Source: Trichosphaerium sp. ATCC 40318 (Eukaryota; Protista; Tubulinea). Taken from it: a stretch of DNA of 64,000 bases. Each line of letters opens with the position of its first letter. The first letter of the stretch is position 1. Shown in pieces: positions 12,873 to 42,662 of this stretch. Location: positions 62,001-126,000 of the forward strand of contig JALMLS010000027.1 of assembly GCA_038496445.1 (NCBI GenBank), read 5' to 3'. Below the pieces are notes generated by a model, which was not told where the DNA came from, made no database searches, and saw nothing but the letters and a program-made list of their open reading frames with translations. A program made the translations under genes and the position numbers.

Positions 12873-13760
12873 ATGAGTGACTTGGAGACATTGATAAACC
12901 CTGGAACAAAGGCTCACGTGACTGTCAAAGTTAACACCCCACAAGAAGTAGTTGAAACGCTTCTGGCTACCTTTGAAAAACGCGGTGAGTTGCCATAACG
13001 TAAAATAAAAATGCTGTATTTAAACTTACTCTAACAGGGTTTGAGGCTTATTTTGAAGATGTAACGCTTGCGCAGCACTCTCTACAATGCGCTACACTTG
13101 CGGAGAGTAACGGGGAAACGCCACAGTTGATTTGTACGTTTTTTATTTTGATTCTATTCATCAACTGTGATATTTGTTTCAGCTGCATGCTTGCTACACG
13201 ACTATGCACACATGCTTTACACAGAAGCAGATTGGAAAAAAGCTGACATGCTTCACGAAAAAATTGGGCATGATTTCCTATCTCGGTACAAAGTCAATTT
13301 GTCAAAGACGTGACCAGTTTCTAGATGGTTTACAGACGATGTTACCAAACCAGTTCTTCTACACGTGCCAGCGAAGAGGTAAGTTGACTTGTTTGGATGG
13401 TAAAGCATTTACTTTAGTTACACTCAGTTTAACTTTGTACTTTGCTGAGCAACTTTAATAGGTGTTTGGTGACTGTGGATAGTAAGTACTTTGATCTACT
13501 TTCTAAGGCGTCAGTGTACTCTTTGGAGATGCAAGGTGGGCCATTCTCTAAAAGAGAAGCCGAGGAGTTTCAAAAGAAACCATTTGCTGCTGATGCAATG
13601 AAGTTGAGACGATACGACGACATGGTAACGATAAAAATTATATTGAGTTGTATTAACAACTAATGTATAGGCAAAAATGCCAAACTACAAGACGCCACCA
13701 CTTGAACACTTTAAAGTTTACATGTTGCAAAGTATTTCTACAACAAGTTTTAACCAATGA
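12873..13760 (+). CDS. HD-domain diiron oxygenase, PhnZ/TmpB-like (phosphonate-degradation-associated HDIG family)
   Basis: Spliced reading MSDLETL...EAYFEDVTLAQHSLQCATLA...ACLLHDYAH...HEKIG...VLLHVPAKR...LSKASVYSLEMQGGPF...AMKLRRYDDMAK. It matches the PhnZ motif series (YxxE, H, HD, H, H, RxxDD). ATG at 12873, TGA at 13758-13760. Confidence 0.85.
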
Positions 13761-13877
13761 TACCTAGAAAAGCCATATAGTTGCATTGTTGCTTAAATAT
13801 CCGCGTTGAACATAAATAAAGCTTTGCTTACAGCTTTATCAATAATAACACGCATGTGATGTTGGGTTTTTTTTGAC

Positions 13878-16800
13878 ATGTGGCATTCAACTCTCGTTTT
13901 GTTAATCAAGGTCTTGATGAGACATGTTTACTTACGATTGACTTGCTACAATGTCACAACGCGCTGTCAATATGTCATAGGTACTTTGCACGCTCCTTCC
14001 TGTTTACATACGCTTTTTAGTTATCTGATGTTTAAAAAGGTTACATAAACGCTTGGTTACTTGTAGAAACGTAGCTTAAGCTGTTTTAATGTATATACAT
14101 GCGCGTACAGCTTAAATATCAAAATAAACCATCAGGCTACTGGAAAGATATCAAAAACCAGCGTTATGCGCTTGGCCGTGTCGCTGCTACTCTTAAAATT
14201 TTTCACACCAGAAACTGGTATAATGTAACAAAGGATACGCTAGTACGTACAGGAGCAGCGTCAGTTTTAAAATAGTACGTTTTTTAACGTTTAATGTGAA
14301 CTGCTTAACCGCCTAATGCTGTAGCTACAACTACTCAGTTTCTAGATGCCTGCAAGCAGTATACCCAGATGTCACATGGAACATAGAGAACTTCAGGTGC
14401 GTAAACGCCCAAAGCAAGCTTTCAAAACTTTTTGTTTTTTTCATAATTTCTGTTGTTATTGTTGTGGGTTTTACGCTTCTAATATGCTCACAAATAGGCA
14501 CACACCACGTAAATACCTTCATAGTAAATACAACCAACGAAAGACATTCGATTTTATTGCTCAGAAGCTTAACCTTGTGGACCTTGACGCGTGGTACTCT
14601 GTGACAGTTGCAGATATTCACAAACATGGTGGTGGTGCTATTTTGCAATTGTACGCACGTGATTTCTCATGGGCACGGGTATTAATTGTTACTCGTGTAG
14701 GTATGGTAACTCCTTATCACAAGGTTTGCAGTCGCTGTACCCTGAGCGCGAATGGCACCCATGGAAGTTTAAGTAATGATGACTTGGTTTAGGCAGCTTT
14801 TCTGACCTTTTCTACAAATAGGCAATCTCCCACGGGTTATTGGCAGGACATTCGCAATCAAAGACGAGCTTTAGATGCTCTTGGTCATAAACTAAATGTA
14901 AAGGAGCTTGATGGTTGGTACAAAATATCTCATTTAGAAATGGCTTCAGGGTTAGGAGGTGTCTTAGTCCACTAGTACGTTAAGACCTCTCCCTTTGTAC
15001 TTCTTATTGGTCTTATAGTTATGACAACTCTTTATTAAAGTGTCTAAAGGCACTGTACCCGCAAAAAGAATGGAAGTATTGGCTATTCAAGTGCGTTGTT
15101 TAATTCTTGTAAAGATTTAATCTTCATGATAGAGGCACCCCCAGAGGTTATAATGGCGATCTACAAACTCAAAGAGAGACATTCAATGATATTGCGGAAC
15201 GTATGGATATAAAAGAGTTGGATGATTGGTACAGCATTAGAGCTTCAAGTTTACCCGAGTTTAGAGGTGCTGGCATTCTATCCAACTTGTACGAATAATT
15301 TTTTATCTTCCTCTTCTCACATATTCACAGATATGGTGACTCTCTTTCAGAATGTCTCGAGACTCTGTATCCCAATCATGACTGGAAACTTTGGTTTTTT
15401 GGGTGAGTGTTAGTGTTGTATTGCTTTATTTCCGATTTTTATTGTGCTCTTACTTTTGTTGTTAGACGAGCTCCTACTCAGTACTGGAATGTAAATAATT
15501 TAAAGAGGCTTGTTTTTGATATATCTAATATACTCAAAATAAAAGATGCTGGAGACTGGAGTACAATAAGCCCGGCCACTCTAAAAGATATGAATATGAC
15601 ATTTGCTTTGCATGCTTTAACAAGGTAAATGATTATCCAACATGTTGGTTTTTTCTTTGTCTCTTTGAACGACAACCAGGTTGCAATGTGTTAATTTTTT
15701 TCATTTCTAGATTTGGGTCTGTTGAAAAGACACTTGAAGTTCTGTTTCCAAATGCTATCTGGGACCAAGAATTTGATGTGCTTTGGCAAGAATCTGTATC
15801 AACAAAGAAACATACTTCATCATTCCGTTCTAAAAGACAGAAACGTGTCATACCTAATGCTAAGTTCTGGCTTAAGCAAGAAAATCCATTAAGGTTTTTG
15901 AAGAATGTTCAAAAGAGATTACGCATAACTGAACCCTCCATGTGGTACTCTTTTTTTCTTGTTTTTCAACACAAAAAATGACCATGCTGCTACTATTTTC
16001 TTTTTGTATAACTGCGGTTGATCCTTTTTTTGACTTGGAATTCATTCTTACAAGAATTCAAGGTATCATGTGTCTCTTGGCCAGCTGGAGAACTTTGTAG
16101 GTGGATCTGGTATAGTAAGATACTGTTGGCCTCATGCTCTTCGTCTAGTTGAACCAAACTTTCCTTGGGTTTGGCAACGCTTTGATAACACAATAAGTAA
16201 ACAAGCTCAACAAAGGTATGTGTTAAAAGTACATATTGGAAACTTACAGGAACGATTTTAGATTGCTTTACCGAAGAATAAAAACTATTTTCCCTGAGTC
16301 TCAAGTCCGTCAAGAAGCGACTATTGATTTATCTGAAAATCGTCAATGGATAGTATCTGTTGATATACTAGTGCCTTTCTATAATATTGCTATTGAGTAT
16401 CAAGGTAAGCACTCAAGGCACTTTTTTACAAAAATCAACCTGAATGATTTTGGACATTGTTGAGCAATTTTGAACCTGCTCTGTTGGACTTGCAGCTCTG
16501 GGTTTTTATATATTATTTAGGTCAGCAACATTACGATGATGTCTATGCTTGGCACTCTTCTGAAAAGCAGAAAATACTTGATGCTCAAAAGAGTCAACAA
16601 TGTGCTGATGTAGGAGTAAGACTTGTACCTATTCCATATTGGTGGCGTGGTGATACAGCTTCATTACTAGCAACGTTGAACTATTACTGTCCTGATCTTC
16701 AGTTATATGTACCTGTAGGTGCAAAGCCTCTTCTAGATGAACTCCAGAGTGAAAGCGAATCAGGTACGTATCATTAGGACAAGGCTTAGCCTGTTTCTGA

Positions 16801-16889
16801 ATCTCGATCTCAAAATTGCTTTTACTAAAGTCTTCCTTTTTGTAGGTGACAGCAGATTAATGAAGCCCACTGAGATCCTGCTCTGTTAG
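13878..16889 (+). CDS. Protein with ~6 tandem ~75-aa Trp-rich helical repeats and a C-terminal PD-(D/E)xK (Vsr/DUF559/RAP-like) nuclease domain; possible organellar targeting peptide
   Basis: The repeat consensus PxGYWxxxxNQRxxLDxxxxxLxIxxLDxWYxVxxxxxxxxGGxxILxxYxxSLxxxLxxLYPxxxWxxWxF can be read across successive exons. C-terminal motif: VDILVPFYNIAIEYQG/QQHYDD...DAQKSQQCADVGVRLVPIPYWW. Start and stop are tentative. Confidence 0.75.
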
Positions 16890-17051
16890 TAGTAACCTGT
16901 TACGTTTGTATCTAATGTAAATAGTCAATAAATGCATGACGTGAACATGTTAAAGACGAAGACGATAGAAGACTGTACAACACCTTGGAACTACCAGTTT
17001 ATTTTTTCTACACTTTTTTGTAGTCATACGAGATATCTCCCCGAGTATGGA

Positions 17052-17940
17052 TTATGGTTCCCAACTATCACGTGATGCTGTATCGTATATACCACTTTTA
17101 CCTACTAGATGTGAAAAAATAGGCATAACATAGTCATCCAAGTTGTTAAGAGTCCAATCTTTTTTTCTGTTTTTCTTGATTGCTTTGTAGAAAATCGACA
17201 TGCCATGCTTAATAACAGGTTGCCATATCACGGAACTAATGCAATTGTAGCAAGAGCCCGGTAGGTGGTCCGAAGCTGAATAAGTTAAGTTAGAGAGACT
17301 TTCTTCAAATTCTTTCCAATGAGCTTTTTCTTCCTCAGTTTTGCAAAAGTCATCCATTGTGTATGTATCATCATAGTCATCAGAAAATTTTTTCAAAAAT
17401 GATAGTTTATCCTCAATCGAAGAGAAAGGAGGCTTTGATAGTCCTTCGTTTATGATGGTAAACGCCCAGTCTTTTTTAAGTATAAGTGTATATATCTGTT
17501 CTATTGTTATACGAGCTTCCTTTCTATCTGGCCGTGGGCCACGCTCCATTCTCGAAGCTAAGAAAAATATCAGAAAAAAAAACCTAAAACAGGGCGTCAC
17601 ATGTTTGCAACCAAACAACCTTCGAACGAGTTTAAGAACCTGTACGAAAGTGGAAAAACAGAAAGTACGTACTTGGCTCACGTGCTTTATAAGTAAACTT
17701 GTTATCAATACAAGTGAGATATTCCGTCAAGTTGACGTGAGGGTACAATCCGAAAAAGAAGTCTGACCATAATTTTTTCTTATTGTTGATGTAGATATCA
17801 TACAGTAACTTATTGGCGCTACTGAAACGTATCACTGTTTCAATTGGCGCTGCTTCCATACATAAAAGAAGTACTTCAGGCGGTAACGTCACAATAAGGC
17901 GATTTGAGCTCATAGACTGTTTTAATTGTTCTAACGCCAT
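17052..17940 (-). CDS. F-box-like domain hypothetical protein (2 exons)
   Basis: N-terminal LIVTLPPEVLLLCME...RFSSANKLLY...LW pattern. ORFs 17632..17940 and 17052..17708 can be joined through a GTACG intron. Confidence 0.55.
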
Positions 17941-40774: not shown

Positions 40775-40809
40775 AACACGTTCTGATACGAATGTAACCC
40801 CGCCAAAGT

Positions 40810-42662
40810 CAAATAGACACAATAGGAAAAGAATTAGGAGTAAAACAGCTTACAGACTGGTACAAAATAACGACCCGACAGGTAAGTGACCGCGGTGGCA
40901 GCGCGGTGATGAATACGTACGTTCATAGTGACTTTTGGGTTGACATTGACACTTCTGGGCGTTAACAAATATCAGGTGTAGCAATTCTATGCTCAACATG
41001 TTAGAAAAGGTGTTTTCTTCATACAGTTGGGATAAAAACGGGTTTACGTACACGTGTATTTCGAGTTTTCAATTGCCAAAACAAAAAAAAAGAGTGCGTT
41101 TTTGACACCACATAGTCGTGTTGGTAAAGGTTACAAGCATGATGTTTCTATTCACAAACAAGAGTTTGAAAAGGTAGCAGAGGAACTCGATATAAAGACG
41201 TTATGCACATGGGAAGAAACGCCAATAGAGTTACTGAAAAACTTTCGTGTTTTGTCCGCGTGCGTTTACTTCCAAAGAATGCTGTATTGTTGACACTAAG
41301 TGTAGTTACGGAGGTTCGTTGTACGACGCGTTGAATACAGTGTACCCGCAATATCCGTGGCTTGTCGATTGTTTTGCTTACGCTGCAAGTGGCTCTGAAA
41401 GCAGATTGAGGTTGTTGAATGATATCAGCGAATCACTGAGTATAAAAGTTCTTGATGACTGGTACAACATTTCTAACAGTCAAGTCATTCAGCACTCAGG
41501 GCAATCTGTGTTGTCATGGTACGTGTTTCTTTATGTTACCCAACGATAGTGTTAATGTGGTTATATTAAAGCTACAATAACTCACTGTATAAAGTGGTCA
41601 CCGAGTTGTACCCAAACCATAGTTGGTCAGTTCATGAATTCAAGTAAGCCAGTTGCAACAGCCTGTTAAGAGTTTAATGCCATTCCTCAGGCACAAACCC
41701 AAAGGTTATTGGGACGATATTTCGAATCAAAAGAAGCTTTTGGATAATATTGGAGTCAAACTAGGTATAGAAGAACCAAAACAATGGACAAGAATTTCAG
41801 CAACAGCATTTATTAAATATGGTGCAAATTGTGTTCTTTCTCGGTACTTAGTGTCAAGCACATTTATTTCTAAATATTGATATCATTGCTTACTTCTTGG
41901 ACACAAAGATACGGATCTATAAAAGATATGATGAAGACGGTATACTCCTCTGACGAATGGCACGAACTGGAGTTTACTATCAAGTATGTTTACTAAAAAA
42001 TAAGTCATTTGTTGATTTGGTTCACCGAAATAGTTTGGAGCCTTTTTGGTATGAGGAGACTAGACTTATTCTAGAGAACCTTGGAGAACGCCTTGATATT
42101 ATGGTATTTAATGATTGGTATAATATAAATACAAGCCATTTTATTACCATAAAGGAAAAGAGCGCGTTGGAGAGGCAAGTTGCAACTGCTTCAAAATTGT
42201 TTTACTAACAGCTTGTAAAAACAGGTTCAAATATGATTTGTCCAAAATGTTAGTAGCAATTTACCCTTCTATTCCATGGAGATTTTTCAACCGTAAATCA
42301 CGCCCATTAGAATACTGGCAAAAGCCAGAAAACGTGATCACATCTTTGAAAGAGATTGAATCGGTATTAAATCTTTCAGAGCATGAGCAATGGTTAGTTA
42401 TATAACTGTGAATCTACTAGTTTTTAAGACTTTTTCTTAAAGGTATACTGTGTCCAGAGAACAGGTGTCAATGTTGGGCGGTCCGGGAGTATTAAGGTAT
42501 TATCCATATGTACTTAGACTTGTATTCCCTACAGTGGAATGGCAATGGGATCGCTTCAAGTTTAACAAGCGAGCCAAGCAAAGGTACAGTTTTTTCAAAA
42601 AAAAGCCACTTAGCCAAAATAGGTGGATGGCTGAGTGCATTGGTAAATTAACTCATACATGA
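40810..42662 (+). CDS. Second member of the ~75-aa Trp-rich repeat family, apparently without the nuclease domain
   Basis: Same repeat: DTIGKELGVKQLTDWYKI, GGSLYDALNTVYPQYPW, LSIKVLDDWYNI, HKPKGYWDDISNQKKLLDNIGVKLGIEEPKQW, RPLEYWQKPENV, LRLVFPTVEWQW...KRAKQR. No EYQGxxHY motif follows. Confidence 0.7.

Follow-up and report, generated by a model that had tools for sequence, protein, structure and literature searches.

A nuclear gene of Trichosphaerium joins six 75-residue helical repeats to a predicted Vsr-like nuclease domain and belongs to a large family that crosses the domains of life

The window analyzed here, a 64,000-nucleotide stretch of a contig from Trichosphaerium sp. ATCC 40318, consists of eukaryotic DNA of about 38% G+C that is rich in short GT..AG introns, and the gene that concerns us encodes a protein in which six tandem helical repeats of approximately 75 amino acids are followed by a predicted nuclease domain of the PD-(D/E)xK class. 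This gene is real, nuclear, intron-rich, and transcribed. It extends from about 13945 to 17000 on the forward strand, and its coding sequence, from the ATG at 14099 to the stop at 16889, is assembled from 14 exons that together provide 1902 nt and specify 633 amino acids (Table 1). The evidence for splicing consists of contigs from three public runs aligned to 13700-17000, runs X1 and X2 being flagged 'RNA?' and X3 being unlabelled, and contigs of these runs support all 13 coding introns. A single 1337-nt X1 contig (record 2) spans seven introns across 15143-17000 and joins repeats 4-6 to the nuclease exons and the 3' end, and the nuclease exons are therefore spliced to the repeats, as had been supposed in an earlier note on this DNA that was made from the letters alone. 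A 34-nt intron at 16216-16249 was ruled out by the RNA contigs, the true intron being 46 nt long (16216-16261). At the 3' end, X3 exhibits an optional 40-nt GT..AG intron at 16885-16924 (joint 16884/16925) that X1 does not, and which would swap the final residue and add a few more (…ILLFNKCMT). X3 differs from the window at several bases, and it may therefore derive from another strain or species.

The in-frame stop codons TAG at 14072-14074 and TAA at 14087-14089 precede the ATG at 14099, so the protein starts there, about ten residues ahead of repeat 1: it begins MRVQLKYQNK, enters repeat 1 at residue 10-11, and has no extension ahead of that repeat and no separate presequence. The Arg-containing, acid-free N-terminus that the earlier note had read from 13878 is in fact non-coding, lying in or upstream of the 5'-untranslated region (UTR), as is evident from the X3 joint and the in-frame stops. 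Splicing of the open reading frame (ORF) at 13878 to the repeats was tried in three ways, which were ruled out by the reading phase, by stop codons, and by the RNA joint 13980/14040. In the spliced mRNA, all ORFs that begin at an upstream ATG end before the coding sequence or are out of frame with it. Two short upstream ORFs are present in the 5'UTR, one of nine codons from the ATG at 13951 to the TAG at 13978-13980, which ends at the 5'UTR exon boundary, and one of eight codons (MYIHARTA) at 14085-14111, which runs across the main ATG in a different frame; a role in the control of translation is possible for both.

The six repeat units occupy residues 10-84, 85-159, 160-234, 235-309, 311-381, and 409-482 of the spliced protein. 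A hidden Markov model (HMM) of the repeat, built mostly from other proteins, scores units 1-6 at 77.9, 90.2, 84.5, 73.7, 30.1, and 43.9 bits, respectively, which bears out the six tandem units with fixed positions that had been described from the unannotated sequence. The fixed positions are P1, W5, N10-Q11-R12, D29-W30-Y31, G42-G43, Y50, S53, Y62-P63, W67, and F72, and the consensus derived from 917 units of 151 proteins is PkGYWkdieNQRkFlDwLakKLgIksleDWYkVskkdIienGGsgLLkyYggSLskaLqsiYPEhpWdpWKF. Among the same 917 units, conservation is lowest at positions 35, 36, 39, 44, 45, and 55, and lysine or arginine is enriched at positions 2, 12, 21, 25, and 71. The median net charge of the family's repeat units is +1, and in the window protein the isoelectric point is 9.6 for the repeat region and 5.6 for the C-terminal part. 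For units 1-4, the coding sequence of each unit is divided between a longer exon (153 or 156 nt) and a shorter one of 72 nt, invariably in phase 2, and this regular exon pair indicates that the array grew by tandem duplication of the pair. Five of the 13 coding introns, those starting at 14275, 14651, 14975, 15289, and 15945, begin with GTAC (GTACG in four of them) rather than with GTAAG or GTGAG; all five are situated after a first-half repeat exon, indicating that intron sequence was duplicated along with the exon pair.

In an AlphaFold 2 model of two units (predicted local distance difference test score, pLDDT, 94.7; predicted template modelling score 0.77), the repeat is confidently predicted to be a rigid module, with 75 amino acids and four to five helices per unit. 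The earlier note had held that it is not a PPR, HPR, OPR, or TALE repeat, and this stands, since those have units of 34-38 amino acids with two helices and their Pfam families gave no match in any scan of the repeats. Indeed, no Pfam family reached its cut-off on the repeats, whether window exon pieces, homologues, or two-repeat fragments were scanned. Against solved structures, the best Foldseek match of the repeat model has an E of 0.38 (annexin), and VIA-align over 48,161 chains gave Z<4 (TetR helix-turn-helix, Slx4 CCD, and SAM), both of which we treat as no match. The linker between repeats 5 and 6 is basic and has a K-R-Q-K-R patch, read by eye, that may be a nuclear localisation signal.

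Following the repeats is the motif VSVD-x10-EYQGQQHY...LDAQK...GVRLVPIPYWW, which the earlier note had recognized, though with a D-x9-E spacing that is actually D-x10-E. The signature D…E-x-x-G-x-x-H…D-x-x-K is complete in the window protein, with D525, E536, G539, H542, D559, and K562. A nuclease HMM of the family scores the window domain at 108 bits (E 1.7e-35), and 13 of the 13 near-invariant family columns are kept, including E536-Y-Q-G, D559-x-x-K562, and the P-x-x-W-W tail; across 50 family domains the D, E, and H and the D..K pair are invariant or nearly so. Since the catalytic residues are all kept, the window nuclease is predicted from its sequence to be active. Structure was predicted for the homologue P0034, which is the closest among the matches listed (30% identical overall, and approximately 36% in the nuclease domain). 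The full AlphaFold 2 model of P0034 (pLDDT 85.8) has a C-terminal four-stranded sheet, formed by strands 557-564, 571-578, 583-588, and 624-629, with flanking helices, and in Foldseek this domain matches the catalytic domain of the homing endonuclease I-Bth0305I (3r3p) and E. coli Vsr (1vsr and 1cw0) with a probability of 1.0 and target-normalised template modelling (TM) scores of 0.53-0.63. As modelled on this 30%-identical homologue, the C-terminal domain is a Vsr/I-Bth0305I PD-(D/E)xK fold. The proposal that the array is fused to a Vsr/DUF559-type nuclease fold is thus upheld, the two parts being spliced together in RNA and the homologue model superposing on Vsr.

At the sequence level the domain is closest to DUF2726 (PF10881), a weak match in 27 of 52 family domains at E<=0.1 (best 5e-6), although full-length homologues score 15-17 bits against the gathering score of 24.7 and thus miss it, and the window exon pieces gave no Pfam match. 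DUF559 provided one match only (E 0.094, below gathering score). RAP (PF08373) matched one of eight full-length homologues, at E 0.089 and 13.2 bits against a cut-off of 24.2, and matched none of the 52 nuclease domains at E<=0.1. A PDB sequence profile search with the nuclease domain produced nothing meaningful, and FASTKD4/RAP chains are absent among the sequence and fold matches of the domain. VSR, DUF559, and DUF2726 were grouped together by Steczkiewicz et al. 2012 (PMC3424549), and I-Bth0305I has been described as an enzyme of several domains, the catalytic one being Vsr-like (PMC3239194). In the literature searched, DUF2726 is the subject of incidental mentions and two comparative sequence analyses, a PD-(D/E)XK classification and a HEPN superfamily survey.

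Table 1 Coordinates of the repeat-nuclease gene and its parts within the window
Feature	Position	Strand	Description or evidence
5'UTR exon (minimum extent)	13945-13980	+	X3 contig joint 13980/14040
5'UTR intron	13981-14039	+	59 nt, GT..AG; X3 contig
Coding exon 1	14099-14274	+	start codon, ten residues, first half of repeat 1; joint 14274/14325 in contigs
Exon 2	14325-14396	+	72 nt, phase 2; second half of repeat 1
Exons 3 (14498-14650) and 4 (14701-14772)	14498-14772	+	repeat 2; 50-nt intron between
Exons 5 (14822-14974) and 6 (15019-15090)	14822-15090	+	repeat 3
Exons 7 (15133-15288) and 8 (15331-15402)	15133-15402	+	repeat 4
Exon 9 (15466-15624) and start of exon 10 (15711-15768)	15466-15768	+	repeat 5, degenerate, 30 bits
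Basic linker within exon 10 (…STKKHTSSFRSKRQKRVI)	15769-15849	+	between repeats 5 and 6
End of exon 10 (to 15944) and most of exon 11 (16063-16215)	15850-16189	+	repeat 6
Vsr/DUF2726-like PD-(D/E)xK nuclease domain (predicted)	16190-16708	+	exons 11, 12 (16262-16404), and 13 (16521-16763)
Predicted catalytic residues	D525 16362-16364; E536 16395-16397; H542 16529-16531; D559 16580-16582; K562 16589-16591	+	spliced coding sequence
Last coding exon (…GDSRLMKPTEILLC)	16846-16889	+	stop 16887-16889; joint 16763/16846 in X1, X2, X3
Coding introns	14275-14324, 14397-14497, 14651-14700, 14773-14821, 14975-15018, 15091-15132, 15289-15330	+	contigs
Coding introns, continued	15403-15465, 15625-15710, 15945-16062, 16216-16261, 16405-16520, 16764-16845	+	contigs

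The window protein belongs to a family that is large, is already abundant in databases, and is without a characterised member. A 50-column profile of the window's first-half exons, searched against 1.84 billion cluster representatives, matched 5127 of them at E<1e-3, 2164 at E<1e-10, and 327 at E<1e-30. The best 150 of the 5127 contain from 4 to 22 repeats each, and in 88 of them the chain also includes the C-terminal nuclease domain, which is almost without exception the last part of the protein. Among the named sources are Heterolobosea sp. BB2, the transcriptome of a marine protist (MMETSP), and Cavostelium, an amoebozoan with many paralogues; one member, of 2124 amino acids, is encoded on a 1.37-Mb eukaryote-like contig, and Atlas clusters with the repeat point to Tubulinea, Discosea, and Nucleocytoviricota. 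AlphaFold DB clusters with the repeat fold contain two planctomycete repeat-only proteins and two entries that, from their accessions, we take to be dictyostelid proteins, and the models of prokaryotic entries named DUF559, 'Restriction endonuclease', and 'HNH endonuclease' also carry it. In the case of the Deltaproteobacteria metagenome-assembled genome CSMAG_2928, a protein encoded at L103:1789-3519 (+) contains six 75-amino-acid repeats and the nuclease, with an E of 2e-60 to the window protein. The neighbours of this gene encode a sigma-54 response regulator and a Schlafen/AlbA_2-HATPase_c_4 protein, which argues that the contig is genuinely bacterial, and the locus shows that the family crosses domains of life. 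Nothing on this repeat-nuclease family emerged from literature searches that covered RAP, amoebae, and giant viruses.

A second paralogue lies in the window approximately 25 kb downstream, at 40798-42660 (+), with at least six repeat-like exon pairs (for example HKPKGYWDDISNQKKLLDNIGVKLGIEEPKQW… and YNNSLYKVVTELYPNHSWSVHEFK). No nuclease domain is detectable in the window beyond the gene at 14099-16889, and this second copy may be a repeat-only member or a truncated one.

The repeat is a divergent, remote branch of DUF4046 (PF13255), a Pfam family of unknown function on which no paper was found in the literature searched. The two-unit model aligns with ESM-Atlas clusters annotated DUF4046 at TM 0.77 and 0.69 over approximately 150 residues (root-mean-square deviation 3.0 for the best), and AlphaFold DB entries for DUF4046 match the repeat model at E 1e-4 to 2e-3. 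A DUF4046 protein of Bacillus cereus, which scores 30 bits on its own Pfam model, has four units in register with the 75-amino-acid HMM and has the motifs P-x-x-F-W and G-S…L-Y-P…W-x-F in common with it. The Pfam model itself finds DUF4046 at E<=1 in five of 74 two-repeat fragments, and residues 94-245 of P0034 obtain 14.6 bits against a cut-off of 22.8, which misses the gathering score. The bacterial protein of locus L103, when used in tblastn, retrieves 170 Bacillus/Priestia plasmid records with E down to 3e-12, and nine of the 12 rows listed for these matches bear the DUF4046 annotation, so this protein bridges the eukaryotic repeats and Bacillus DUF4046 and supplies a sequence-level chain between them. 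The nearest Pfam family of the repeat is accordingly one of unknown function and not a characterised family with a role apart from nucleic acids. The suggestion in the earlier note of a separate, new scaffold has to be reworded, since the repeat is distinct but has more than 5000 representatives in databases, some of which UniProt automatically names 'RAP domain-containing protein', and it is a distant branch of DUF4046.

This patchy distribution over the domains of life, with clusters rich in Nucleocytoviricota and with DUF4046 proteins on those 170 plasmids, suggests the possibility that the family consists of domesticated or still selfish homing-type DNA endonucleases, in which the repeats would form the DNA-binding part for a long target, as NUMOD or treble-clef modules do in nucleases of phages and giant viruses, and whose present range among amoebae, their giant viruses, and bacteria would be the result of horizontal transfer. 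Consistent with such an origin, the solved structure that matches best is the I-Bth0305I catalytic domain (PMC3239194), and many proteins of phages and giant viruses combine the nuclease domain with other N-terminal modules, some of these proteins bearing names such as homing endonuclease, group I intron protein, or treble-clef zinc finger protein. We nevertheless consider a homing-type family improbable, because the 75-amino-acid repeats occur in none of the 80 viral loci retrieved through the nuclease domain and because the window gene, which has 13 spliceosomal GT..AG coding introns in a regular phase-2 pattern, is positioned between ordinary genes and not in an intron, intein, or recognisable element. 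A scan of the bacterial homologue, of four further homologues, and of the window exon with the PADLOC-DB defence models was without a match.

Another consideration is whether the protein is an enzyme at all. It might instead be a scaffold without enzymatic activity, one whose repeats bind proteins or some other ligand and whose nuclease-like domain has no more than a structural or regulatory part. Repeat-only proteins are known from Bacillus (DUF4046), from planctomycetes, presumably from dictyostelids, and from the second paralogue in the window, and the weak single-unit fold matches include SAM and TetR-type helical bundles, which would suit such a role. We regard it as very improbable, given the near-invariance of D, E, H, and D..K in 50 domains and their retention in the window protein, and given a recurrent fusion to nucleases and to a ligase that points to nucleic-acid chemistry. 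In four relatives, P0119, P0044, P0107, and P0086, two of them from Cavostelium, repeats, Vsr-like nuclease, and a complete minimal ATP-dependent DNA ligase are present in one chain. P0119, P0044, and P0107 pass the cut-off of PF01068, and the ligase is located after the nuclease. P0119 aligns with positions 23-281 of the 283 of the NCBIfam 'DNA ligase' model PRK09125 at E 1.6e-45, its 155 bits being below the curated cut-off of 200, and this ligase match and one sub-threshold chance match are all that NCBIfam returned on the family.

We therefore return to the explanation that we prefer, to which we give about an even chance, namely that the protein is a nucleic-acid endonuclease aimed by its repeats, with DNA slightly favoured over organellar RNA as the target. 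The rigid, mildly basic array would bind nucleic acid and would position the C-terminal metal-dependent nuclease on it. The N-Q-R and K/R positions found in every unit could provide repeated backbone contacts, and the variable positions on the following helices (approximately 35, 36, 39, 40, 44, and 45) might give each paralogue a separate target. Both the type of substrate and the cell compartment are what we infer. On the side of DNA are the bacterial and giant-virus members, the fusions to ATP-dependent DNA ligase, which point to DNA ends, and the DNA endonucleases that are the nearest solved relatives; that prokaryotic entries named for other nucleases adjoin the repeat fold also counts in favour of a repeat-aimed endonuclease.

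Several observations weigh against this explanation. A large family of active DNA endonucleases in the nucleus would be hazardous, the repeat is without a solved structure (the PDB sequence profile was blank, and the searches with the two-unit model and with single units gave no match that we accept), and the models are of a homologue and not of the window protein itself. No discrete recognition 'code' was seen, and variable surface positions are to be expected in any repeat protein. The Vsr-like fold in RAP and FASTK proteins works with RNA, UniProt automatically names some members RAP, and some helical proteins of the mitoribosome of Toxoplasma are weak matches of the whole P0034 model (E 0.02, probability 0.75-0.85). 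In a crude composition test, the first 20 residues are free of acidic residues in 42 of 143 relatives, compared with about 8% expected, and 31 of the 143 are acid-free and also basic (>=3), with N-termini resembling mitochondrial presequences such as MLRATFLFVRP… and MLLSRLSARRL….

The last of these observations belong to the main rival, an organellar and probably mitochondrial RNA-binding or RNA-processing factor, analogous to FASTK, OPR-RAP, and HPR-RAP proteins, in which the array would read RNA and a RAP-like Vsr fold would cut or anchor. This we think possible, at a clearly lower probability than a repeat-aimed endonuclease with a leaning to DNA. It accords with the common layout of a helical array and a C-terminal Vsr-like domain and with the many paralogues per genome, which is the pattern of organellar RNA-binding repeat families, and the automatic RAP names and the single Pfam RAP match can be read in the same way. 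FASTKD4 is termed a Vsr-like protein acting on mitochondrial mRNA in the title of PMC11879112. The window copy itself fits it poorly, having ten residues before repeat 1, without a presequence, and a basic linker resembling a nuclear localisation signal. The DUF2726 matches (27 of 52 domains) likewise contrast with one weak RAP match in eight full-length homologues, the solved relatives of the domain are DNA endonucleases with no FASTKD4/RAP chains among the matches, and in some relatives a complete ATP-dependent DNA ligase is part of the chain. Moreover, the full architecture is present in the bacterial protein of L103, and members occur in giant-virus-rich clusters, so the basic function needs no organelle. 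The mitochondrial RNA processing proposed in the earlier note thus retains the presequence-like N-termini of approximately one-fifth of relatives in its favour and loses this copy, which has no presequence, and the DNA evidence; it is one of two live options. Taken as a whole, what the note had observed is partly confirmed and largely right, and its interpretation is partly supported.

A bolder extension of the repeat-aimed endonuclease would make the 75-amino-acid unit a new programmable recognition module, in which a few variable residues let each unit read a set number of bases, and which is coupled to a nuclease alone or to a nuclease and a DNA ligase, the ligase forms being single-polypeptide enzymes that recognise, cut, and rejoin (mitochondrial) DNA in amoebae. 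We see this as a long shot.

The last exons of a gene upstream of the repeat gene lie on the same strand as it, at 13442-13762 (+) (…RRYDDM / AKMPNYKTPPLEHFKVYMLQSISTTSFNQ, then the stop codon), with an RNA depth of 46-133 compared with about 5-18 over the repeat gene, and an AATAAA at approximately 13815 follows it, so that the gap to the 5'UTR of the repeat gene is <200 nt. Directly downstream, at 17052-17940 (-), are ORFs of 218 and 102 amino acids on the opposite strand, which resemble exons of a convergent gene of unknown family.

The family can be compared with several known systems. The RAP helical-repeat proteins (FASTK, OPR-RAP, and HPR-RAP) similarly place a C-terminal Vsr-like PD-(D/E)xK domain after an N-terminal helical array and have many paralogues per genome, and part of the window protein's family has presequence-like N-termini and automatic RAP names in common with them. 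They differ in that their unit is a hairpin of 35-38 amino acids, compared with 75 amino acids and four to five helices here, and in that the Pfam RAP model is not reached by the window family, which also occurs in bacteria and giant-virus-rich clusters, bears a ligase in some members, and in the window copy is without a presequence. I-Bth0305I (EDxHD) and Vsr, which are the best solved matches, have the D…E-x-x-G-x-x-H core of the window domain, and I-Bth0305I likewise joins a separate DNA-binding region to its Vsr-like catalytic domain. In contrast, both are short prokaryotic or phage proteins without the 75-amino-acid repeat, and I-Bth0305I resides in a group I intron, whereas the window protein is encoded by a nuclear multi-intron host gene. 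The phage and giant-virus nucleases built from treble-clef DUF4379 plus DUF559, HNH_repeat, or NUMOD also combine a tandem small DNA-binding module with a nuclease, and the DUF4379 plus DUF559 group shares the nuclease fold of the window protein; their repeat fold is different (TM 0.38 for HNH_repeat), and the viral loci retrieved, as noted, contain no 75-amino-acid repeat.

Two Pfam families provide the closest comparators for the separate parts. DUF4046, which is plasmid-borne in the Bacillus cereus group, has the 75-amino-acid period and the motifs P-x-x-F-W … G-S-x4-L/I-x2-L-Y-P-x3-W-x2-F, although the Bacillus proteins have four units and no nuclease, and their Pfam model remains below cut-off on the eukaryotic repeats. 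DUF2726 is the best sequence-level match of the C-terminal domain, but its proteins are short bacterial or phage proteins without repeats, and most of the matches are below the gathering score. Helical-repeat arrays combined with a nuclease, as in PPR-SMR, OPR-RAP, and FASTK proteins and in engineered TALENs, hold a central place in the expression of organelle genes and in genome engineering. The window family builds the same repeat-plus-nuclease logic from a different and larger repeat that is without a solved structure, a passing Pfam model, or a literature of its own. If the array does read sequence, it would be a new recognition scaffold, and if the family serves mitochondria, it would represent a class of organellar factors that has so far been missed in Amoebozoa and Heterolobosea. 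Under either explanation, a family of thousands, distributed among amoebae, other protists, giant-virus-rich clusters, and bacteria, is big enough to merit a name.

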